Positions 6,407-60,663 of a DNA stretch of 64,000 bases are shown piece after piece. Position numbers and translations under genes: made by a program. Under the pieces are notes generated by a model. It was not told the origin of the DNA. It did no database searches and saw only the letters and a list, made by a program, of their open reading frames with translations. How positions within the stretch are numbered: position 1 is the stretch's first letter; each line of letters opens with the position of its first letter. This stretch comes from Podarcis bocagei (taxonomy: Eukaryota): assembly GCA_964188305.1 (NCBI GenBank), contig OZ076896.1; one strand, written 5' to 3'.

Positions 6407-6761
6407 GGGACACGGGTGGCGCTGTGGGTTAAACCACAGAGCCTAGGACTTGCCGATCAGAAGGTCGGCAGCTCAAATCCCCGTGACGGGGTGAGCTCCC
6501 ATTGCTCAGTCCCTGCTCCTGCCCACCTAGCAGGTCAAAAGCACGTCAAAGTGCAAGTAGATAAATAGGTACCACTCCGGTGGGAAGGTAAATGGCGTTT
6601 CCGTGCACTGCTCTGGTTCGCCAGAAGCGGCTTAGTCATGCTGGCCACATGCCTCAGAAGCTGTACACCGGCTACCTCGGCCAATAAAGCGAGATGAGCG
6701 CTGCAACCCCAGAGTCGGTCACGACTGGACCTAATGGTCAGGGGTTCCTTTACCTTTACCT
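6407..6761 (+). mobile_element. Sauria SINE, full length
   Basis: GGGACACGGGTGGCGCTGTGG tRNA-like head, conserved body, (ACCTTT)n tail. Confidence 0.92.
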
Positions 6762-9173: not shown

Positions 9174-10226
9174 TCTTTCTTTCTTTGTATAATTTTTATT
9201 AAATTTTCTGTTTTACAGTTTAGAATACTCATTTTACATCCTTAAGATATCAATGACTTCCCGTCTTCTCTTTCCATGGTTCATTTTACATATAATAAAT
9301 CCCTGCATATTTTGCAAAAACTATACCATTCAGTATTCCATTAATACATCCATCAAAACTTTTTTACACTGTTGAATTTATCTTAATGCCGCCAGCGTTT
9401 TCAGCTGTACATAATTTCCTCCCATATAGCCAATAAACGTTTTCCAGTCTTCTTTAAACATATGTTCTTCTCGTTCTCTTATTCTATAAGTTAAGTCTTC
9501 GAGTTGTGTATATTCTGTCAACTTAAGTTGTCATTCTTCTTTAGTTGGGACCTTGCTCATTTTCCATTTGGGGGCTAACAAAACATGGGCCACAATAGTA
9601 GCATACATAAATAACATTTTCTGACGCCTGGGAATTTCAGTCTGAATTATCCCCAACAGAAAGAATTCTGTTGGGGGGGGGAGTATTTTTAAACATTTTC
9701 GCCCTAATTCATTATGGATCATTTCCCAGTAGTCTTTTACCCTTTTACAAGTCTACCACATGTGAAAGAATGTTCACTCCACCTCTTTGCATCTCCAGCA
9801 CTTACCTGATTCAGACTTATACATCTTAGCAAGCCTAGGTAAAGGTAAAGGGATCCCTGACCACTAGGTCCAGTCGTGGCCGACTCTGGGGTTGCAGCGC
9901 TCATCTCGCTTTACTGGCCGAGGGAACCAGCGTACAGCTTCCGGGTCATGTGTCCAGCATGACTAAGCCGCTTCTGGCGAACCAGAGCAGCGCACGGAAA
10001 CGCCGTTTACCTTCCCGCTGGAGCGGTACCTATTTATCTACTTGCATTTTGACGTGCTTTCGAACTGCTAGGTTGGCAGGAGCAGGGACCGAGCAACGGG
10101 AGCTCACCCTGTCGCAGGGATTTGAACCGCCGGCCTTCTGATCGGCAAGTCCTAGGCTCTGTGGTTTAACCCACAGCGCCACCCGCGTCCCTTCTTAGCA
10201 AGCCTAATCAGAGTTAAATACCATCT
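9174..10226 (-). mobile_element. L1 LINE 3' fragment (ORF2 C-terminus plus 3'UTR), interrupted by a Sauria SINE
   Basis: Minus-strand translation RWYLT...KCWRCKE...FFHMW*TC...YWEMIHNEL...FLLGII...KWK...KEE resembles the L1 ORF2 CCHC knuckle region; has stops and frameshifts; T-rich tail near 9174. Confidence 0.85.
9838..10191 (-). mobile_element. Sauria SINE, full length, 14-bp TSD
   Basis: TSD TCTTAGCAAGCCTA at 9824-9837 and 10193-10206; reverse complement of Sauria consensus. Confidence 0.93.
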
Positions 10227-11009
10227 TTCAGTCCCGGGGAATGAAAGATTCCCCTAGCATGCATAAAACCACCCTGAAACATTTCACACTAACTACATGG
10301 AGTTACACCCCACAGCTGTGGTTCCTGGCATCAACTGTGCTGCCCATTCTGCACTTCTGAGCAAAGGCTCCTTGCCAGAGTGCAGTTCTGAGCATTGAGC
10401 CTCGACTTACCCAGTTAAGGGCACTAAATAAGCCTGGAGGGACTGCAGAGAGCTGCTGCCATATCACATTTGCAGTAGAGGGCTAGATCGTTCCTTGACC
10501 CATCTCCATGTTAGGTGGTGTTCCACATCCACAAAACCGTTCATTAACCGTTACGGTCAGCGTAATATCTGTTTCCTTGGTGAAGCTGCACATATTCAGG
10601 GTGTAAAATTACCCGGCCTTTGCTAACTGTGTCCAGAAATAGCTGCCATAGATTTGAATAACTCGCTGATTTCAGACTTGGCTTTCGTTTAACCGCCGTT
10701 GACCAGGCTGTTCCCTGCTTTGCGCTGTTATAAGAATTTAAGGTCCCAAATATACAAATTAAATGTTCATAGATTTACAAGGCAAACACATACATAAGTT
10801 TGTAAACCAAGTGTCTATAATAGCACAGGAGAACAGTCCTGAAACCATTTTGACTCTCCCAAATTGACTTCAAATGTTTTCTGCAAGGAGGAAGGAAATG
10901 GGAAAGCCTCTCCATTTATCTTTTCCTTAGCTGTCTTTAGGGCAGTGTTTCCCAACCGGTGTTCCGCGGCACACTAGTGTGCCGCGAGACGTTGCCTGGT
11001 GTGCCGTGG

Positions 11010-11780
11010 GAGGGAGGCGGGCGAGGCGCGAGGCGAGAGGATCGGGCGCGGCGGAGGCCAGCCCCGCGCTTGGAGAGGACGCAGCAGCCGTCGCCAAACC
11101 CGATCCTCCTCCTCCTGCTCCGCCGCCGTCCTCTGGCTCTCGGCCGGGAGGAGCCTGCGGCGACGGGGCGGGCGCCGAAGTTAGCAGAAGTTGGCGCGCC
11201 TCCTCGGCAGCGCCTTCGTCCTCCTCCTCCTGCCTCTGCTCTCCTCCGGCGGCGGGGGCGCGCCGCCGCCGGATCCGCGCGCAGCCTCTCGCCTCTGCCC
11301 CTCGCCGCGCCGGCCCAGCCAGTCAGCCAGCCGAGGACGGGCGCGCTCTCGCTCCTCGCTCGCTCTTTCCGTGTCGCGAGGGGCGGAGCCCAGGGGAAAG
11401 GACCGCCCAGCAGGCGCGGCTGAGGCGCGCATGCGTGGCTGGGGGGGGTGCGCGCCCTCTGCTCTCTGCCTCTCTCCCCCTCCCCCCTCTGGACCCCGCG
11501 CGCGAGGCTCTCCGGGGGCGGGAAAAGGGTTTCCCTCAGGCGGAAGGCCCCGTGGGAGCCGGGAGGGGGGCAGCCGCTGCTCTGGCTCCCCCCCGCCCCG
11601 AACCGGCTCTTCCTTTCGGTTCTGGCGGGGAGCGCGCTCTCCCCCCCCCTTGCGCTCCGCTTTCCCCTCAGAAGAGCCCCCTGCTCCCCGTAATCGAGGG
11701 TGATCGTGCCCAGGGGCTCGCCAGATCCCCCTCCGGCCGTCTCTTAGTCCCCACACGATCCCAGGAGCGCGACGTGGAAG
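11010..11780. other. CpG-island-like cargo block 1 (captured promoter/exon fragments)
   Basis: Very GC- and CpG-rich against an AT-rich intron; GC box GGGGCGGAGC 11380-11389; NRF1-like GCGCATGCGT 11427-11436; 129 bp shared with block 2. Confidence 0.75.
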
Positions 11781-12610
11781 TGTGTGGACACCCGCAAAGG
11801 TCAGGGATGCTTCTCAAACCGCCAAGAGGCAAAGCCAACGTCCCTCTCACCTGGCCCAGGAGTCCCAGATGCGCCAGTTCTCAACAACAAATGCATCGAA
11901 CAGGGTGTGCAACCCAAGTGAATCACTATTTTAAGCCATTCGGGGGGGGGGGGAGATGCAACCCATTCTTAAATCTTTCCTACTGAAAATGACCTAAAAG
12001 TGTTACATTTGGACGGATCACCCCCATAACTAATGTTGCATCATCTCACTATTTGCAGCAAGCATATACATTCTTTTCCACGGTTAACTTTTGTATACCT
12101 CAGAGCACCAAAGTTTATTTCCTAATTGCTTACTGATCTGCTGGTGAAGCAAGTTTTCTCTTGACTCCCCTTTGAACCATCAACATATCCTTTAACATCC
12201 TTTTGACACTAATCAATAAGTTACATTTTTTAATCTTTTTTATTTAGCTATAAATGCCAGGCCATCTCTTTTCTCTGCCTGGAGAGGAACAGATAGCTCT
12301 TGCCAGAGGTCAGATGTGATGGACTTGAGAGGATTCCCTGCTTTCCACCATTCTGTCTGTCTTGACTGCCCCCCCCCCCTGTTTCTTTTTCAACTTTCTC
12401 TCCAGACTTCCCCTATCAGCATAAAATTAGGCAGAAGAAGCTTGGTTCCCTACCCCTGATCCAGTGCAGGGGGGGGGGGGACGACAAGCAGTTGTAGACA
12501 ACCTTATTTTAAAAGTTCTCTTCATGTAACTTTAGTACAATTACATCCTCTGTATATCATTTATACCAGAAGTGGGGAGATGATAAATTATGCTGTACCA
12601 TGCAGCACTA

Positions 12611-12840
12611 GGGACGCGGGTGGCGCTGTGGGTAAAACCTCAGCACCTAGGGGTTGCCGATCGCATGGTTGGCGGTTCGAATCCCCGCGGCGGGGCAAGC
12701 TCCAGTCGTTCAGTCCCAGCTTCTGCCAACCTAGCAGTTCGAAAGCACCCTTATGTGCAAGTAGATAAATAGGGACCGTTTCCGTGTGCTGCGCTGCTGC
12801 TGGCTCACCAGAGCAGCTTCGTCACGCTGGCCACGTGACT
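12611..12840 (+). mobile_element. 3'-truncated divergent Sauria SINE inside the hAT cargo
   Basis: GGGACGCGGGTGGCGCTGTGG head; breaks off at GCCACGTGACT and joins GC-rich cargo. Confidence 0.85.
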
Positions 12841-13260
12841 CGGCCGGGAGGAGCCTGCGGCGACGGGGCGGGCGCAGAAGTTGGCGCGCCTCCTCGGCAG
12901 CGCCTTCGTCCTCCTCCTCCTGCCTCTGCTCTCCTCCGGCGGCGGGGGCGCGCCGCCCTCCCCGGCCGGGGGGCTCGGCGGGGCCCGCGGGGAAGGAGGC
13001 CATGTTCGCGGCGCGCGGGAAAGCGGCCCCCCTCGCCCGCCTCCGGCCCGCTCCCCTCCCCCTGCGCGCTGCCCTAGCCGTGCCGGTCTCCTCCCCCTGC
13101 GCCGCCGTCCCCTTTCCCCATCCTAGGAGCCGCGGTCCGCCTACCGCCCCCGGGCCGCGGCGCGGCTCCCAGCCCGGGCTGGCCTCCGCCTCCTGGGACG
13201 CGCGCCCACCCCCGCGGCCCCCCAAACTTCGGAGCAACTCTCCAGACGCTTCTCCCCCGC
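12839..13260 (-). pseudogene. Captured 5' end (5'UTR, ATG and start of CDS) of an unidentified CpG-island gene
   Basis: Minus strand GCGAACATGGCC (ATG 13003-13001, strong Kozak, YY1-type AAnATGGC) encoding MASFPAGPAEPPGRGGRRAPAAGGEQRQEEEDEGAAEEARQLL. Confidence 0.55.
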
Positions 13261-16200
13261 CTCAGTCTCCCTCCTTTCCACTTCTCTTCCCCCCTTCCTT
13301 CCCTCTTTCTTTCTCTTTCTCTCCCACCCGCCTTTCCTTCTATTAACTTTCCTTTCCCCTCCCTTCGTCCTTCCTACTTTTACTCCTGGGCTCCTCCCCC
13401 CTTTGCGCAGCCACAAATCAATCTCTCTCTCTTTTTTCCCCTCTCTCTCTTCTTTGCTCAGACGCAAAAAAGCGCCGCTTTTTGGAAATCCGGACTGCTG
13501 TCCCCGCTGAAACGATACTTTAAAAAAGGAAGAACCCACTGGCTCTTATTTCTGTTTAAAGCAGTAGATCCCGAACTCTTTTGGCCCACTGCCCCCTTGG
13601 TTCCACATCCCCCAGTGTCCCCTATGCTTACTCTATAGAAAGCATTACAGGGGTTAACGCGGCTCGCTAAGGAAGATATTAATAGAATTCTGCATTTGGG
13701 GGGAGACCCTAACAGTCATCTACCATTACCTTCTATGCTGTTACTATTTTTTTTTTTTTTTTACATAAGTAAAAAGTGACCTTTCCCCATCTGGCATGGT
13801 GGTGTGCCTTGAGATTTTTTTCATGAAACAAGTGTGCCTTTGCCCAAAAAAGGTTGGGAAACACTGCTTTAGGGCACCTTTGTGTATGAATAGGGTGAGC
13901 CTGTGACCTGGATTCAGGAGTTAAAGTGTTTACCATACAAAAGAATGGCTGGGCTGTCCAAGTAAGCAATCACTGGCCATTGTCAGGTGTCCTGGCAGAC
14001 AGGATTTCTGCTGTAGACCGCCTACTTCTGTGATGTATGTATGATGTTTTTGGGGCTGGTCTTGAGCTACAGAGTGGGCAATTTCCAAAGTCTATATAAG
14101 GGCTTGCACACCTTATGTGCAAACCACACTGTGGTTCTGGGTCCCTCCTCCCTCCTGCGTGTGGTGAGTGAGGACCCTGTTGCAACCGTTGAATAAAGAT
14201 CAGGCCTCCTAGTTGCTTTGCTTCTCAATATTCTCTGATTGGTCTATGTTATTTTCTCCTATCGATAGGGAGCCCACTTAAGGACTCTCTACGGGTTTTT
14301 GCATACCCCATAAGGGAAAAGGAGCAGGTTTTGTTTACATCAGCTTAATGTCTCCTTGCTCCATTTTGCAAGCGCCCTTATTTTTGGCTTTCTCCTTGTG
14401 TGATTTGAAGAGCAGCTTGCATGCTCTCTTCATTTGCTTGTGTATATGGACGCAGAGCAGTTAAGCAGGCAGCAACCTTTCATCATGTTGACAAGCCTAG
14501 TTAGAGCAAACAAACCAGAGCATGAGTACAGAAGCAGGAATCAAAGCCGCTCAGCTTATCCCTGGCTCTCTCTCTCTCTCCCTTTCCTTCCCATTCCCCT
14601 CGCCCTGCTGCTCCTTGCAAGGACTCTCGTGTTACATCACTATTTCCCTTTGAATCTCGCCTTTTTTGTGGCCTGTGCTGCAGTGCTCAGCCCAGCCAAT
14701 CAGGCGGCAGCGTTCCCAGTGCTGGCCGGCCAATCCAGAGCCGGCGTTTGCTGGAAATATGAAGCCCTTAGGGGAAGGCAATAACAAAAGCCTTTCACTG
14801 CAGACAAATGTTAAGTGTCTGTGCAGACTTTTCCTGTTTTTAATTTTATTACTCCAAGAATGGAGGGCTTGTTGTTTCTTTCATGTTTCCCTTTCAAGCA
14901 ATTTTAATTATACATTTGTGCTACATCAGAGACTTCGGGAACAAAGTGATTCAGCCTATTGCATCTGAAGCTGAAAAAGCGCTAACCTTCTGGCAATACA
15001 AATATATTCCAGTGCTGTAAATATAGATGACATGCTGGAGAATTTTAAGCAGTTGGAAAGGTCTCTGACACCCCACGCGGTGCCCTAGAGAGCAAATGAT
15101 GAGAAAAACAGACCACTTTTTTCTCATAGTTTTATCGGGTGCTTTAAAAAAAGGGGGGTAGGGATGAAATGTGTTTTCCCAGCTGTGAAATTTGCTAAAA
15201 GCACAAAAAGAAAAAAACCCTCAAAGCACAGAAACACATTTAATTTTAATTGCTGTTAGTCATACCTTAGCAAAGGATTTTATCTTATGTATCTGGAGTT
15301 AGGCTTTTTCTATTTTTTTAAATAGACTGAAGTCAGAATTTGTACACTCTGCCGTCGTTTAACAATAACAAGCTAAAACCATGCAGGGAACCATCCTTTC
15401 CCCCCTCCTTGATACGCTGTTGGAAATACTTAAAGGAAATCCCTTCTTCCCTAGTACTTTAGCTAATAGCATTTCAAAATACTTTCCTGCTGTTAAAAGG
15501 GCCCTGAGGAAATAAGTTGCAGGTTACATGTTTTCTTTACATTGGTGTAGGAGTCTGGGGAAAGGTTGAATGCAAAATTAGAAATCGCACTGGTGACGTA
15601 AAGTGAGCCGACAAGCTGGAAACACAAGGCACAGTTTCATTATTTATTTATTTACTTTATTATTTCACCAGTGAAAAAAAGCCGGAATTGGAGCTAGGAG
15701 ACACAAAGGTGTATTGTGAGGGGGGTTAAAAAAGCTCATTCAGACTTGGCAATTGGTGTTAAATATTTAGAAAGAATTTCTTTGCAGCTAAATGGTATCG
15801 TTGCTTCAGGCTTTTTTGATCACGGGTTTTAATGCTCTGAAAACAGAAATGACTGTTATGTGTACGTCTGTACCATATCTAATGAATTAATGGTGTCATC
15901 GTTCACTATCACAGTTCTTCTAAATCGTCTTTATTTGTGTGATCGGTGCTGGAGAAAAACCCAATCCCTCCCCCTTTTCTGCTTAATGACTGCAGAAGAG
16001 GATTTATTAGCCCTCAGATTTTCAGTTTGTGTCTTTTCCCTATAAAAAGAACATATGAAGCTTTAGAAAGGCACAACGTTTAAAAACACACACCCATATG
16101 TTCTTATTTTGGGGGGTTTAGGCTGTGGTTAAGATGAATGAAGGGCGCCCAATATCGGCTTCTAAATAATACATAGAGCTTGTCTGTATTTAATGCTACA

Positions 16201-17942: not shown

Positions 17943-20370
17943 GTTTTGTGAATCGCCAACAAGCGACCTGGAAATGCGAGGAGGACGGGGACGGGGGAAG
18001 CGAGCGCGGTCCGCCGCCGCGGCGACTGCGCCGGGGGCGGATGTTAGCTTCACAGAGTCCAGGGGACTGCAGGGCAAGAACAGAGGTGGTGCCAATGGAA
18101 AAGGAAGGAGGGGCAGCCTTAATTCGAGTGGCCGCAGGACACCCCCAAATTGTGCCATAGAGGATGTTAAAGTCAGCCCCTTGTCCACCAATAAAAGGAA
18201 AAATAAGCCACCCATGGAGCTGGATTTGAACTCCAGCTCAGAGGACAATAAATCTGGGAAGCGTGTCCGTACCAATTCTAGAAGCACTCCCACCACTCCC
18301 CAGGGCAAGCCAGAGACTGCTTTTTTGGACCAAGGCTGCTCTTCTCCGGTTTTGATTGATTGCCCCCATCCCAACTGCAACAAAAAATACAAGCACATAA
18401 ATGGGTTGAGGTACCACCAGGCTCATGCACACTTGGACCCGGAAAACAAACTGGAATTTGAGCCTGACAGCGAAGACAAAATCTCCGACTGCGAGGAGGC
18501 GCTCAGCAACGTGGCACTGGAATGCAACGAGCCAAGCACAAGTTTCTCTCATTTTGATCAGCTGAAAGCACCCGCGTCTCCCTGCCCCCTCAGCACCCCC
18601 GGGACGCCCAAGGGGAAAAGGGAGCAGGCGAGCAACGGCAAGAACTCTGGCAAAAAGAGGGGCTTGAACAGCGAACTCAACAGCCTGCCAGTCATTTCCA
18701 ACATGACCGTGACGTTGGAGAACTGCTCGGTGGCAGACGGCAGTTTGGTGGCCGAGATGCCCAAACTGGAGGCTGAAGGGCTAATAGACAAGAAGAATGG
18801 GGGAGAGAAAGAAAAAGGCAAGAAAGGCAGCAACTGCAAAGTCGAGAAGAACCTGTCGAAGCTGAAAACTGCCCGGCCCATTGCCCCAGCTCCAGCTCCA
18901 ACCCCGCCTCAGTTAATAGCTATACCAACGGCAGCCTTTACAACCACCACTACCGGCACGATGCCAGGATTGCCCTCGCTGACGACGACTGTTGTGCAGG
19001 CGACACCAAAGAGCCCTCCGCTGAAACCTATTCAACCAAAGCCCACCATCATGGGGGAGCCGAGCACCGTCAACCCGGCCCTCACGTTACTCAAGGACAA
19101 GAAGAAGAAAGAGAAGAGGAAGCTGAAGGACAAAGAGAGCAAAGAGAGCCTGAGCCCCAAAATGGAGCTGAAGCTGGGGAAGTTGGAGGACGCCAAGGGG
19201 CCCGGGAAAGAGATCGCAGGGCATTTTTTAAAGGAGCATCTCAGCAAGAATGAGGTGCTGGCGAACGGGCTGTCGGAGTCCCAAGAGAGCAGGATGGCAA
19301 GCATTAAAGCCGAAGCGGATAAGGTTTACACCTTCACAGACAACGCCCCCAGCCCTTCGATAGGCAGTGCCTCCAGGATGGAATGCAGCACTTTGGTGAA
19401 CGGACAGTCTTCCATCGCGCCGCTGCATGTGCTGACGCAGAATGGGGCAGAGGGCGCCGCTGCTAAAACCAACAGCCCGGCTTACTCCGATATCTCGGAC
19501 GCGGCCGATGATGGCGGTTCTGACAGCCGGTCGGAGGGGATGAGGTCCAAGGCCAGCTCCCCTTCGGATATTATTTCTAACAAGGACAGCGTTGTCAAAG
19601 GGCATTCCTCCGCCCCGGTGCAGCCGCCCCAAGTGAAAGAGCCCCATTCTCCCTATTACCACGGTTATGATCCGTACTATTCTCCAAGTTACATGCACTC
19701 CGGGCAGGTCGGGGCCCCTGCGGCTGGGAACGGCAATAACGCACCGGGAATGAAGATCAAAAAGGAGGCGGAGGAAGAGGCTGAGAAGAAAGAGAAGGCC
19801 GAGCCGGCTGAGTGCAAGAAAAGCGAAGCCAGTCCCACTAATTTACAACCTCAGCACCAGTCGGTCATAACTCAGAGGCATCCTGCACTTGCCCAGTCAC
19901 TTTACTACGGCCAGTATGCCTATGGGCTGTACATGGACCAAAAGTCCTTGATGGCTTCGAACCCAGCTTACAGGCAGCAGTACGAGAAATATTACGAGGA
20001 CCAGAGACTGGCGGAGCAGAAAATGGCGCAAACTGCTGGGAGAGAGTGTGAAAGGAAAAACGAACTCCCCCTAAAAGACCTGGGGAAAGATGATAAGCTG
20101 AAAAACATCCCCTCCGCTACTATCTCCAAAGCGCCGCCGACTCCCGAGGCCAGTAAAAATAACTCTAAAATAGGGTCATTGGTCCCTAATAAAACGGAGG
20201 AGACAAGCAAATCGCAGCTTCTTCCCAATCATCAGCAACAGATTCAGTCAGATAGCTTCAAAGCAAAGCAAATGGAAAATCACCAGCTTATAAAGGAGGC
20301 GGTGGAAATGAAATCTGTTATGGATTCTATGAAACAGACTGGAGTAGATCCCACTACAAGGTTTAAACAG
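17943..20370 (+). CDS. ZNF608: ZNF608 large exon (2428 bp) containing the single C2H2 zinc finger
   Basis: tacgcag|G TTT TGT ([20 protein letters not shown]...) to TTRFKQ|gtgagc; finger [24 protein letters not shown] at 18361-18432; matches ZNF608 rather than ZNF609 as recalled. Confidence 0.98.
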
Positions 20371-21024
20371 GTGAGCCTTTTTGAAATGCCTAGACCGTTA
20401 ATAATTGGTGGTGAAAAGGGTTTTGGCATCAGTTTAGGCCGCAGCCCTGTGCATGCTTACCTGGAGGGGGCCAGTTGCCATCGTGGGTCTTCCTTCTTGC
20501 TTTGCATGTATTTTAGGGGGGGCGGGGCGAAGGGACCTCTGTCCCTAGGAGTTGGCTCCTATTGGAGTTGTAGTCCAGAACGTCTGGAAGACACCAGGTT
20601 AGCAAAGGTAATGACGAAATACTGTTGGAAGATAAATGAGCATCCAAATGTATCGTTGCTCCTTAATTGCATTACAGTATAAGGATGTTTTCGCAGCCTT
20701 TTCTCTCTCTAAAAAAAGAGAGTTCAGGAGGGTTACCATGAAGCAAGAGCGGTGGCTGTTATGCGAAAAGCAAAAGCTTTAAAGCCTTCTTGGGTGTGCA
20801 GAACCAGTCATACAGATCTTTGACTCCCAGCCAGTCTTTCTAAGCCCGGCAAATAAAACCTTGTATTTACTTCAGGGTCGACTCTTTCTATTTTAAACTT
20901 TCTATTCCCAACTGGCAGAAACTGAGACTTACTGTGGAAGCGCATTTGTGTAAATGTTGTCTTCCTTCTTTAAAAATAAAAATAAAAGAATATGTTCACT
21001 TATCCTTAAGGGCATCCTTGTCTT

Positions 21025-21393
21025 GGGGACGCGGGTGGCGCTGTGGTCTAAACCACAGAGCCTCTCAGGCTTGCCAATCAGAAGGTCGGCAGTTCGAATC
21101 CCCGCGACAGGGTGAGCTCCCGTTGCTCGGTCCCAGCTCCTGCCCAGCTAGCAGTTCGAAAGCACGTCAAAGTGCAAGTAGATAAATAGGTACCACTCTG
21201 GCGGGAAGGTAAACGGTGTTTCCGTGCGCTGCTCTGCTTTGCCAGAAGCGGCTTAGTCATGCTGGCCACATGACCCGGAAGCTGTCTGTGGACAAACGCC
21301 GACTCCCTCGGCCTGTAGAGCGAGATGAGAGTGCAACCCCAGAGTCGTCCGCAACTGGACCAAACGGTCAGGGGTACCTTTACCTTTACCTTT
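21025..21393 (+). mobile_element. Sauria SINE, full length
   Basis: TSD ATCCTTGTCTT (21014-21024, 21394-21404); (ACCTTT)n tail. Confidence 0.92.
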
Positions 21394-21752: not shown

Positions 21753-22136
21753 TAATGCATTTCAAGTGTTACAGCAGTGTTTGATTTATTGTTGAATATA
21801 TTTCAGTTTTTTTCTATATTTCCCCCTGTTAGCTTCAAAAATTCTCAAAATGTTTTATCGCTACAGTAGGTAGGACTTTGGATTCTCAAAAAGTGCTGCC
21901 CTGCACTGCACAACAAACTGCTTTTGTGACTTACGGGGATCTCAAAAGCAGTAAGTGACATGGTTGAGGGTCTGCTGTTCAGGGAAATAAAGGCCTAAAG
22001 CAGCTCTCTGGGTTGTGGCCAGTTTCCCATTTTCTCTGTTGCTGTTGCCCCCCATTTTGTAGATTAATGTGGCTGTGAAGATTCCTCTTTAACAATATAA
22101 ATGGTGAACATTTTTTTTCTTCCCTGCCCGTATCAG

Positions 22137-22554
22137 GACCCAGACACGAGAACATGGCACCATTATGTATATCAGCCAAAATATCTTGATCAGCAGAAAG
22201 CGGAGGAGCTGGAACGTGAAAAAAAGTTAAAGGAAGATAGCCCCAGAAAAACACCTAACAAGGAAGCCCCCTTCTCCAGCATTCCTGTCTCATTAAACAG
22301 CATTAAAGAGGAGCCTAAGGAGATCAAGCGTTCCGATTCCCAATCACTGGAGGAGAACAAGATCAAAAATGATGATCGAAAGACTCCTGTGAATTGGAAG
22401 GAATCCCGGGGCGCCAGAGTGGCGGTTTCCTCTCCAATGACTCAGCACCAGTCGTACATACAGTACTTGCACGCTTACCCTTACCCCCAGATGTATGATC
22501 CAAATCACCCTGCGTACCGCGCTGTGTCTCCTGTTCTCATGCACAGCTACCCAG
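22137..22554 (+). CDS. ZNF608: ZNF608 coding exon
   Basis: tatcag|GAC CCA ([16 protein letters not shown]...VLMHSYP) G|gtgtgt. Confidence 0.96.
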
Positions 22555-23061
22555 GTGTGTACTGAATGCTTCTAGACAGACATTAACTGGGCCGTAGCTT
22601 TATCTATTTTGACAGTGCCTGTTAGCAGCGAAGGAGAATTAGAAGCTTCACAGATGACATTTGTTTTGCAAAGTTCTAGGAGCGAAATAGATTTAACACA
22701 AGCTGTTACTTTTTTATGAACTGTCAACATTCCCAGATAACAGTTTCCACATCCCGTGTCATTCGGCTGCGGCCATTACACTGACAGATAGTTTATTGCC
22801 TATAAAAATATCCTAAGCACTTACTGTCAGAATCATTATAGTTCCTATTCCTTTCACTTAAGAGGGACCCATAAATGTTTGAAATGGCTCTAAGCTCAGC
22901 CCTCTTTATAACCTCCTGTTCATTAGGTTGAATTAGCTGGGGCGGGGCGGGAGATCAAAGCGCATGGGTGCAACTTTGGTAATTTGAATTGGATGCATTT
23001 GGAGTGGCCCGCCCCCAAATGTAAACAGTAATGTGATACGACATTTATTATTTATCTGCAG

Positions 23062-25852: not shown

Positions 25853-26214
25853 GGACGCGGGTAGCGCTGTGGCCTAAACCACAGAGCCTAGGGCTTGCCG
25901 ATCAGGAGGTTGGCGGTTTGAATCCCCGCAACGGGGTGAACTCCCATTGTTGAGTCCCAACTCTTGCCCACCTAGCAGTTCGAAAGCACATCAACTGCAG
26001 GTAGATAAATAGGTACCACTGTGGCGGGAAGGTGTTTCAGTGCACTGCTCTGGTTTGCCAGAAGCGGCTTAGTCATGCTGGCCACATGACCCAGAAGCTG
26101 TCTGCCTGGTAGACAAACACCGGCTCCCTCGGCCTATAGAGCAAGATGAGCACCGCAACCCCAGAGTCGTCCACGACTGGACCTAATGGTCAGGGGTATC
26201 TTTACCTTTACCTT
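25853..26214 (+). mobile_element. Sauria SINE, full length
   Basis: TSD TATGGAGAGGGAT on both sides. Confidence 0.92.
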
Positions 26215-28422: not shown

Positions 28423-28641
28423 TAATTTTGGAAATGTGCATCGTCATGTGACTGGATCACATGAAGAAGAAAAANNNNNNNNNNNNNNNNNNNNNNNNNN
28501 NNNNNNNNNNNNNNNNNNNNNNNNNNNNNNNNNNNNNNNNNNNNNNNNNNNNNNNNNNNNNNNNNNNNNNNNNNNNNNNNNNNNNNNNNNNNNNNNNNNN
28601 NNNNNNNTGTTTTTTATATATATATGCTTATATAAATATAA

Positions 28642-29277: not shown

Positions 29278-29416
29278 NNNNNNNNNNNNNNNNNNNNNNN
29301 NNNNNNNNNNNNNNNNNNNNNNNNNNNNNNNNNNNNNNNNNNNNNNNNNNNNNNNNNNNNNNNNNNNNNNNNNNNNNNNNNNNNNNNNNNNNNNNNNNNN
29401 NNNNNNNNNNNNNNNN
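29278..29416. other. Assembly gap (N run)
   Basis: 139 N. Confidence 1.
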
Positions 29417-33533: not shown

Positions 33534-33883
33534 GGGGATGCGGGTGGTGCTGTCGTCTAAACCACAGAGCCTAAGGCTTGCTGATCAGAAGGTCAGCGGT
33601 TCAAACCCCCGCCATGAGGTGAGCTCCCATTGCTGGGTCCCAGCTCCTGCCAACCTAGCAGTTCAAAAGCACGTCAAAGTCAAGTAGATAAATTGGTACC
33701 GCTCCAGCGGGAAGGTAAACAGCGTTTCGTGCGCTGCTCTGGTTCCCCAGAAGTGGCTTAGTCATGCTGGCCACATGACCTGGAAGCTGTACGCCGGCTC
33801 CCTCGGCCAGTAAAGCAAGATGAGCGCCACAACTCAGAGTCATCCACAACTGGGCCTTACGGTCAGGGGACCCTTTACCTTTA
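33534..33883 (+). mobile_element. Sauria SINE with ~43-bp flanking duplication
   Basis: Full SINE; flanks 33487-33529 and 33884-33926 match with 4 mismatches. Confidence 0.9.
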
Positions 33884-37683: not shown

Positions 37684-38033
37684 GGGGCACGGGTGGCGTT
37701 GTGAGTTAAACCACAGAGCCTAGGACTTGCCGATCAGAAGGTTGGCGGTTCGAATCCCTGCGACGGGGTGAGCTCCCGTTGCTCGGTCCCTGCTCCTGCC
37801 AACCTTGCAGTTCGAAAGCACGTCAAAGTGCAAGTAGATAAATAGGTACCACTCCGGCGGGAAGGCAAACGGCCTTTCCATGCACTGCTCTGGTTCGCCA
37901 GAAGCGGCTTAGTCATGCTGGCCACATGACCCGGAAGCCGTACGCCGGCTCCCATGGCCAATAAAGTGAGATGAGCGCCGCAACCCCAGAGTCAGTCACG
38001 TCTAGACCTAATGGTCAGGGATCCCTTTACCTT
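37684..38033 (+). mobile_element. Sauria SINE nested in a repeat-unit element (37378-38146)
   Basis: TSD TACCATACCCTCC; host family (CTCCAACATTTCTCCGATGAAAATAGGG units, end TTGGAGGGTCTG) also at 32310-32457 and 44772-44930. Confidence 0.9.
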
Positions 38034-50146: not shown

Positions 50147-50150
50147 GAGA

Positions 50151-50219
<69 letters not shown>
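50147..50219. repeat. (AG)n microsatellite
   Basis: About 35 units, interrupted. Confidence 0.95.
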
Positions 50220-57542: not shown

Positions 57543-57638
57543 GGGACGCGGGTGGCACTGTCGGTTAAACCACAGAGCCTAGGACTTGCCGTTCAGAAGG
57601 TCGGCGGTTCGAATCCCTGCAACGGGGTGAGCTCCCAT
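57543..57638 (+). mobile_element. Sauria SINE 5' head only, with 12-bp TSD
   Basis: TSD TAGCTGGATGAA at 57528-57539 and 57639-57650. Confidence 0.85.
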
Positions 57639-60138: not shown

Positions 60139-60663
60139 ATGAGAAAAGCAACGACAAACCTAGACAGCATCTTAAAAAGTAGAGACATCACCTTGCCAAC
60201 AAAGGTCCGTATACTAAAAGCTATGGTTTTCCCAGTAGTGATGTATGGAAGTGAGAGCTGGACCATAAAGAAGGCTGATTGCCAAAGAATTGAGGCTTTT
60301 GAATTATGGTGCTGGAGGAGACTCTTGAGAGTCCCATGGACTGCAAGAAGATCAAACCTATCCATTCTGAAGGAAATCAGCCCTGAGTGCTCACTGGAAG
60401 GACAGATCCTGAAGCTGAGACTCCAATACTTTGGCCACCTCATGAGAAAAGAAGACTCCCTGGAAAAGACCCTGAAGTTGGGAAAGATGGAGGGCACAAG
60501 GAGAAGGAGACGACAGAGGACGAGATGGTTGGACAGTGTTCTCGAAGCTAGCAGCATGAGTTTGACCAAACTGCGGGAGGCAGTGGAAGACAGGAGTGCC
60601 TGGTGTGCTCTGGTCCATGGGGTCACGAAGAGTCGGACACAACTAAACGACTAAACAACAACA
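60139..60663 (+). mobile_element. Bov-B (RTE) LINE 3' fragment with open RT C-terminal frame
   Basis: 171-aa ORF NLDSILKSRDITLPTKVR...VFPVVMYGSESWTIKKA...AFELWCWRRLLRVPWTARRSN; (CAA)n tail. Confidence 0.95.

Follow-up and report, generated by a model that had tools for sequence, protein, structure and literature searches.

Analysis of a 64,000-nucleotide stretch of DNA from Podarcis bocagei (contig OZ076896.1 of GenBank assembly GCA_964188305.1; hereafter the window, meaning the whole stretch) identified a non-autonomous, Pack-type hAT transposon at positions 10943–13866. This element is very probably a transposed copy of a multicopy non-autonomous hAT that carries a fragment of a host gene, and we refer to it as a 'Pack-hAT'. 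Judged by sequence comparison, its cargo is the upstream region, 5′ untranslated region (5′UTR), start codon and ~91 codons of SIX5, on the minus strand. These lizard genomes hold ~40–100 SIX5-bearing copies, which is unusually many for an animal.

The boundaries of the element are exact. A 15-bp terminal inverted repeat (TIR), CAGTGTTTCCCAACC, at 10943–10957 on the plus strand is answered at 15 of 15 positions by its exact reverse complement at 13852–13866, and these two TIRs are the sole zero-mismatch matches of CAGTGTTTCCCAACC in the window. Outside them, the 8-bp target site duplication (TSD) CTTTAGGG stands at 10935–10942 and 13867–13874; it too occurs only twice in the window, each time adjoining a TIR. 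Short TIRs (about 10–25 bp, starting with CAG or TAG) and an 8-bp TSD on both sides are hallmarks of hAT elements, and both are present here in CAGTGTTTCCCAACC and CTTTAGGG. By the same two features the element differs from Helitrons, which have neither TIRs nor a TSD, end in 5′-TC..CTRR-3′ and show A/T insertion. The motif GTGTGCC or its complement is found at 10968, 10977, 10999, 13802 and 13832, so that five of its 14 occurrences in the window lie in the element, all of them in its ends.

An original prediction, made by a model from the letters alone, had described perfect 15-bp TIRs, a perfect 8-bp TSD and a length of 2924 bp without a transposase, and these claims hold to the base: the element, TIRs included, is 2,924 bp long, and none of eight open reading frames (ORFs) of 78–335 aa that were scanned (15 ORFs of at least 60 aa overlap the element) matched a Pfam family. 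The second hAT-like end that it had proposed in the interior is also recovered. Starting at its first base, this degenerate end (13562–13603) aligns with the right end in reverse complement; the score is 16, as against 8.1 ± 1.3 (maximum 13) for 500 shuffles. No cognate autonomous hAT was found in the element, and the 64-kb window holds no other copies of the ends or of the cargo, only relatives of a short interspersed element (SINE) described below. An exact scan of metagenome contigs with the 23-nt left terminus gave 0 matches, and Rfam at gathering thresholds over 10000–15000 gave 0 families. The ends and their immediate surroundings are as follows.

10935–10942, no strand: left TSD, CTTTAGGG, single in paralogous copies of the flank.
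10943–11040, plus strand: family-wide left end, 98 bp, with the TIR at 10943–10957 and GTGTGCC/GGCACAC motifs at 10968, 10977 and 10999; other copies diverge after 11040.
13562–13795, plus strand: subfamily-specific right part, opening with the degenerate hAT left terminus CAGTAGATCCCGAAC..; depth ~100 reads, the level of the SIX5 cargo.
13796–13866, minus strand: family-wide right end, 71 bp, with the TIR at 13852–13866 and GTGTGCC motifs at 13802 and 13832; other copies diverge before 13796.
13867–13874, no strand: right TSD, CTTTAGGG.

Between these ends lie two GC- and CpG-rich blocks, one at 11041–11780 (GC 0.74–0.75, CpG observed/expected 0.82–1.0) and one at 12839–13260 (GC 0.80, CpG observed/expected 0.92), compared with 0.42 in the window overall. 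Position 13003 carries a minus-strand ATG in good context, from which MASFPAGPAEPPGRGGRRAPAAGGEQRQEEEDEGAAEEARQLL is read, and the same frame is continued by the other copy of an internal repeat (..LTSAPAPSPQAPPGREPEDGGG..AAPDP) down to 11038. A profile built from the two ORF pieces and run against 1.84 billion proteins returned a single match (E=1.2e-33). This protein, P0001 (UniRef A0A670I980), is a predicted protein of Podarcis muralis named for its SIX1 SD domain, which Pfam places at residues 210–282 (SIX1_SD, E=2e-11). It is most similar to wallaby SIX5 and to homeobox proteins of the SIX type from monitor lizard, sea krait and turtles. The SD domain of P0001 is 82–86% identical to those Varanus and sea-krait SIX homeobox proteins that are grouped with SIX5-named matches, and P0001 aligns with the turtle SIX5-like protein P0004 (8e-25) from ARQLLPT through the SD domain. 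The window ORF and P0004 both begin with the peptide MASFPA at residue 1, and the window ORF has this peptide and ARQLL.T in common with turtle and wallaby SIX5. With TIRs and a TSD around host gene sequence and no transposase of its own, the element has the makeup that defines the Pack type. The SIX5-derived features are listed here.

11038–11267, minus strand: SIX5 piece A, exon-1 coding sequence from ~codon 16 to ~codon 91 (..APAAGGEQRQEEEDEGAAEEARQLLLTSAPAPSPQ..AAPDP), ending before the SD domain (tblastn with P0001 residues 131–204; profile E=1.2e-33).
12839–13003, minus strand: SIX5 piece B, start codon at 13003–13001 and the first 43 codons (MASFPAGPAEPPGRGG..ARQLL), then out of frame by a 10-bp deletion.
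13004–13561, minus strand: SIX5 5′UTR and upstream region, GC-rich and then CT-rich; collinear with P0001 residues 1–104 up to 13339, at the same depth as the coding part.

Because SIX5 is conserved in vertebrates and neither the SD nor the homeobox domain is in the fragment, a separate SIX5 parent locus must exist. Homologous-protein searches returned no bona fide lacertid SIX5 protein and, for the 168-aa cargo ORF, no match at all; a contig-record search with the 90-aa ORF across the SIX5/SINE junction found no encoding contig. No domain is encoded in the cargo, so that any influence on the host would be regulatory, and the candidate, if there is one, would be a CpG-island promoter pointing antisense to a nearby ZNF608-type gene. 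Two other readings were considered and set aside. The repeat, read on the plus strand, resembles a signal peptide (LARLLGSAFVLLLLPLL), but it has no ATG and is the antisense of an acidic SIX5 stretch. An RNA-labelled run, X25, does not serve as evidence of transcription: it covers the interior without the single-copy flanks, its depths rise and fall roughly with genomic copy number and its contigs carry the variants of other copies. Separately, a CT/GA-type dinucleotide microsatellite at 50148–50219 accounts for the numerous short matches found with the CT-rich segment of the cargo.

Comparison with P0001 points to a second locus with the same arrangement. By tblastn, P0001 residues 1–104 match window 13339–13028 almost exactly and residues 131–204 match 11277–11038, while residues 205–331, comprising the SD domain and beyond, have no counterpart in the window. 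Residues 332–362 are the translated hAT left end (PLAARLARLPPTAHQATSRGILVCRGTPVGKH, compared with PLASRLARLPPTAHQATSRGTLVCRGTPVGKH in the window), and beyond the terminal CACTG the flanks differ, reading WSKEQ.. in P0001 and CPKD in the window. The same left end and the same cargo in the same orientation are thus joined to a different flank, and P0001 therefore represents a different site. P0001 is most simply read as a gene prediction across another Pack-hAT copy, with a start from the SIX5 upstream region, a truncated SD domain and an end formed by a hAT terminus and its flank. The window copy would then be a derivative that lost ~380 bp, including the SD-domain codons. A homologous-protein search with the translated left end (P0001 residues 325–366) returned P0001 itself only, and a contig-record search with P0001 found no encoding contig. 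It follows from this reading that such copies are already annotated as genes, the UniProt SIX1 SD-domain entry being a transposon copy.

Read depth extends the comparison to many more copies. We compared sequencing data with the window over 10300–14500, using raw whole-genome shotgun reads (X24; organism D, sampled at ~1.27x) and Logan contigs (X1 from organism A, X13 from organism F); single-copy sequence corresponds to ~1.3 reads in X24 and to a depth of 18–20 in X1. In X24, 710 reads cover the left end at 11029 and 2,723 the right end at 13810, while the SIX5 cargo at 13021–13264 is covered by 81–126 reads, a second cargo termed Y by 3–33 (11337–12566) and the SINE by thousands. The X1 contigs reach depths of 848 at 13162–13360 and 698 at 13454–13734, with the SIX5 pieces at 698–1,157 (39–64x). 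The contig of depth 1,157 joins 13007..12874 to 11183..11069 and so gives an uninterrupted SIX5 sequence without Y, and a 1,434-nt contig of depth 93 (5x) covers Y from 11371 to 12632 with two substitutions. From these values we estimate ~1,000 copies of the family ends (roughly 500–2,000), ~40–100 SIX5-bearing copies and ~5–10 that bear Y. That the same structure stands at several loci is suggested by the one other locus represented by P0001 and by a depth equivalent to 40–100 copies.

The family also includes a short form, in which 11006 is joined to 13844 with 9 nt added (63 reads). MITEs (miniature inverted-repeat transposable elements) measure under about 800 bp and are homogeneous and high-copy, and at 2,924 bp the window copy falls outside this class. 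Immediately inside the 71-bp right end, at 13796, loose ends of X1 contigs from other family members lead into GC-rich sequence with a TGACGTCA site resembling a cAMP response element (CRE-like). Such sequence in the same slot suggests that other members carry different CpG-island-like cargos. Nearly all reads disagree with the window copy at 11183, 13021, 13022, 13084, 13118 and 13264, private substitutions such as a decaying descendant would be expected to show. In organism F (X13), 19 differences in 455 nt put the divergence of the flank at 4.2%; 11037–11127 is present there in identical form, at ~8x. A young age for the insertion is plausible in view of the element's perfect ends and few private substitutions.

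The second cargo, Y, is 1.57 kb long and sits between two copies of the same 129 bp of SIX5. The original prediction had counted two CpG-island-like blocks in the interior. Their composition is as claimed, but the blocks are not independent, because 11139–11267 and 12839–12957 are the same 129 bp, a 10-bp indel apart: a single SIX5 exon region is split by Y, with 129 bp of it repeated. The features concerned are these.

11139–11267, no strand: direct repeat copy 1 (copy A), 129 bp, matching 12839–12957 (copy B) except for a 10-bp indel; the uninterrupted form is in an X1 contig (11183→12874).
11268–12838, no strand: second cargo Y, consisting of a CpG-island-like part (11268–11780), an AT-rich part (11781–12610) and the 5′ 228 bp of a SINE (12611–12838/43, plus strand); ~5–10 copies by depth in organisms D and A.
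6407–6655, 9941–10192, 21026–21278, 25853–26090, 33535–33779, 37684–37934 and 57543–57635: relatives of the SINE (B box GGTTCGAATCC).

The majority contig carries the 10 bp that are missing in copy B, and P0001 reads LLPTSAPAPS here, so the frame of copy A after ARQLL is ancestral. The base at 11183 is G in nearly all reads; it encodes Pro as in P0001 and turtle and gives a perfect 9-bp tandem repeat, of which copy B lost one unit. At the other end of Y, the tRNA-derived SINE fragment (12611–12843) is 71–81% alike to the seven other copies in the window and belongs to a family of thousands of copies by read depth. ARAGORN found no tRNA in its head. That this SINE is broken, as the prediction had it, is confirmed by thousands of reads from normal copies, which continue with AAGTGTCTCCGG.. 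where the fragment is cut short at 12843. The SINE and SIX5 share CTCGG at their junction, a microhomology of 3–5 bp (at least CGG). Y itself has no Pfam match and no recognisable coding content. Organism F has ~1–2 copies (~1.5x) of the AT-rich part of Y, with 3.7% divergence, and this counterpart may be the donor of Y or its orthologue. Because of the re-copied 129-bp stretch and the junction microhomology, we infer that Y probably entered by template switching during repair or replication, and not by insertion of a transposon or SINE.

The element lies in a repeat of the host genome, which it divides into two parts.

10723–10942, no strand: left half of a host repeat resembling a long terminal repeat (LTR); 165–240 reads in X24, as against 1.3; no other copy in the window.
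13875–14388, no strand: right half of the LTR-like host repeat, with a TATA-like box and AATAAA, delimited by read depth.

Taken together, the two halves are covered by 66–400 reads in X24, which marks them as a repeat of ~50–300 copies, and with its TATA-like box and AATAAA the interrupted repeat looks like an LTR; the window holds no second copy of either half. The outer flanks (10300–10722 and 14389–14500) are single copy, at 0.9–1.9 X24 reads per position. Paralogous empty sites join 10916 or 10905 to 13867 with one CTTTAGGG, the intervening letters being homologous to the left flank; the 10916→13867 joint is supported by 32 reads in X24 and two contigs in X13, and the 10905→13867 joint by one contig in X1. 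Since these paralogous copies of the flank repeat carry one CTTTAGGG, it was duplicated on insertion. The single CTTTAGGG that had been expected at an empty site is thereby observed in paralogous copies of the flank repeat, in all three datasets (X24, X13 and X1).

Downstream of the element, a 902-aa ORF at 17974–20682 (plus strand) with a C2H2 finger constitutes a ZNF608/609-type exon, scoring 0.95 and 0.94 with ZNF608 clusters and 0.93 with ZNF609; a contig-record search with this ORF found no encoding contig. The element is ~4 kb upstream of the exon, to which the SIX5 fragment runs antisense. An intronic position in a ZNF608-type gene is plausible. The idea that a CpG island had been placed in the ZNF608 intron stands insofar as CpG-island-like DNA lies ~4 kb upstream of a ZNF608/609-type exon, but the insertion is inside an LTR-like repeat and not in unique intron DNA. 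Further along, 22101–22565 (plus strand) is likely the next exon after 17974–20682. Elsewhere in the window, a 171-aa ORF at 60139–60654 (plus strand) resembles the C-terminal part of the reverse-transcriptase ORF2 of a long interspersed element (LINE), and runs of N occupy 28475–28607 (133 bases) and 29278–29416 (139 bases).

Several observations weigh against a transposed Pack-hAT copy with the history proposed here. P0001 could in principle be a damaged SIX5 donor locus and not a transposed copy. The hAT target consensus nTnnnnAn fits CTTTAGGG at position 2 (T) and departs from it at position 7 (G), although this is one site and a weak consensus. Neither X1, X13 nor X24 shows reads or contigs that bridge the Y junctions at 11267/8 and 12838/9, and the internal arrangement of the element, meaning Y and the 129-bp repeat, is taken entirely from the assembly. 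The copy numbers, for their part, are derived from read or k-mer depth at at least 90% likeness in GC-rich sequence, together with one predicted protein.

An assembly artefact, in which Y and the 129-bp repeat would join two different family copies, has this lack of a bridging read in its favour, in a multicopy and very GC-rich region with an exact 129-bp repeat. We consider it improbable, as Y has a depth of ~5x in X1 and ~3–26x in X24, unlike a single-copy host locus, the 1,434-nt X1 contig runs through most of Y (11371–12632, two substitutions), the SINE/SIX5 microhomology is clean, and the outer TIRs and TSD are perfect. It is scarcely credible that the interior is ordinary transposon sequence that merely resembles SIX5 and has no host origin. 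The 43-aa piece of the window is indeed weak on its own against turtle SIX5 (E about 0.05) and of low complexity, but P0001 runs the same sequence straight into the SIX SD domain detected by Pfam, that domain is 82–86% identical to those of Varanus and sea-krait SIX proteins, P0001 matches the turtle SIX5-like P0004, and conservation of position holds for the start codon, MASFPA and ARQLL(P)T. The prediction had itself raised the possibility that the cargo is no more than the family's constant internal sequence; the cargo does prove constant within the ~40–100-copy subfamily, yet it is of host origin.

The remaining alternatives concern how and where the capture took place. In a capture in place, gap filling of a double-strand break would have copied host DNA into a plain MITE resident at this site, with no transposition; most single-copy Pack-TIRs of animals arise in this way (Tan et al., 2021; PMC8277862). 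A related version has this very element make the capture, as the prediction proposed. The orthologous site is out of view because the flanks are repetitive. Capture in place nevertheless seems very improbable here: the cargo is present in ~40–100 copies and Y in ~5–10, the same end and cargo recur at the locus represented by P0001, and the private substitutions and deletions of the window copy fit a descendant and not a founder. The claim in the prediction that this element captured host promoter and first-exon DNA is therefore right about the cargo, which is of host SIX5 origin, but the capture belongs to an ancestor of the subfamily and not to the window copy.

A question confined to the founding capture is whether it occurred by macrotransposition, with a fractured left end inside exon 1 of SIX5 and an entire related MITE upstream of SIX5 (now 13562–13866) acting as joint termini and carrying the intervening DNA along as a unit; this explanation agrees with the preferred one on the nature of the window copy. 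In maize, paired Ac/Ds termini are well known to bring about alternative transposition. The degenerate hAT left terminus falls exactly on the boundary between cargo and right part at 13562 and scores well above its shuffles, and the right part therefore resembles a complete 305-bp MITE. On the other side, there is no internal right end beside the 98-bp left end, and the uptake of Y bears a template-switch signature (129-bp re-copy, microhomology), so that the lineage is seen to take up DNA in that way. On balance we regard macrotransposition as unlikely, though as a more serious contender than the other alternatives.

We thus favour a transposed, multicopy Pack-hAT and propose the following history for it, in which the mechanism by which each cargo was captured is conjectural. 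An ancestor of the subfamily would have taken in SIX5 sequence from the 5′ end of the gene (upstream region, 5′UTR, start codon and part of exon 1), and this cargo would have come to lie between a left end of 98 bp and a right part closed by the 71-bp right end. A transposase acting in trans, encoded outside the window, would then have moved the unit to tens of loci by cut and paste. Later, a sub-lineage would have taken up the 1.57-kb host segment Y, likely through template switching in repair or replication: synthesis may have departed from SIX5 as its template, proceeded through Y as far as mid-SINE and returned to SIX5 129 bp back, at the 3–5 bp of microhomology. The lineage of the window copy would also have lost the ~380 bp with the SD-domain codons and one 10-bp repeat unit, and the copy then inserted into the LTR-like repeat upstream of the ZNF608-type exon, with duplication of CTTTAGGG. 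More tentatively, these lacertid genomes might harbour a Pack-MULE-like system built on a ~1,000-copy hAT family, one that takes up CpG-island promoters and first exons, stacks them serially, amplifies them to tens of copies and scatters orphan promoters through genes, possibly after horizontal arrival.

In plants, cut-and-paste transposons that capture gene fragments are a major source of new gene structures. The Pack-MULEs of rice and maize, reportedly described by Jiang and colleagues in 2004, resemble the window element in having TIRs, no transposase, mosaic host gene fragments, a bias to GC-rich 5′ ends and amplification by a transposase in trans. They differ in belonging to the Mutator superfamily of plants, with long TIRs and TSDs of 9–10 bp, whereas the window element is a vertebrate hAT whose TIRs measure 15 bp and whose TSD measures 8 bp. 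Among vertebrates, the Helibat Helitrons of vespertilionid bats are said to have amplified promoters and first exons, in work attributed to Pritham and Feschotte in 2007 and to Thomas and colleagues in 2014. Like the window element, Helibat is a DNA transposon of vertebrates by which fragments of host promoters and 5′ exons reach many loci; unlike it, Helibat is a rolling-circle element that lacks TIRs and TSDs and captures by read-through.

In the only broad survey, which covered 100 animal genomes, 370 Pack-TIRs were identified, 208 of them hAT, and most were single-copy products of gap filling (Tan et al., 2021; PMC8277862). Multicopy cases numbered only four, and anoCar2, the sole lizard genome screened, yielded none (PMC8277862). 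A close parallel is Pack-hAT-N8_XT of Xenopus tropicalis, which carries CAPSL 5′UTR cargo at three loci (PMC8277862). Like the window element, it is a non-autonomous hAT with TIRs, an 8-bp TSD and a host 5′ gene fragment, and its several copies with different flanks imply transposition after capture. The window subfamily differs from the multicopy Pack-TIRs of animals in its ~40–100 copies by depth, in a cargo that spans a promoter region, the ATG and ~91 codons, and in its nested second acquisition. The element fits the transposition-dependent class of Pack-TIRs, far more amplified and with a nested second capture. Transduplication by hAT elements is also known from the fungus Pyrenophora, where a host gene is reported to be amplified by a hAT-superfamily element (PMC3538342, PMC6710886); these fungal elements carry whole genes, unlike the window element with its 5′ fragment only.

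A further lead comes from an insect MITE family, hAT2_NA, which is present in Manduca, Bombyx, Rhodnius and Heliconius with an 8-bp TSD and no reported cargo (PMC3845634). The TIR CAGTGTTTCCCAAC (10943–10956 and 13853–13866) is identical at 14 of 14 positions to that of Manduca sexta hAT2_NA, the TIR alone being compared, while in Bombyx, Rhodnius and Heliconius the hAT2_NA TIR reads CGGTG.. (PMC3845634). This identity may reflect relatedness or horizontal transfer and serves as a lead only; because of it, horizontal arrival of the hAT family may be considered.

In the literature searched, we found no published account of a Pack-hAT, or of gene capture by hAT elements, in Podarcis or other lacertids. 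The present observations suggest that transposition-dependent capture and amplification takes place at scale in a vertebrate, involving the promoter and start codon of a developmental gene, tens of copies and a nested acquisition. The family would offer a natural system in which to ask how GC-rich 5′ ends come to be taken up by elements of this kind, and whether the CpG-island promoters that they disperse stay unmethylated and drive new or antisense transcripts.

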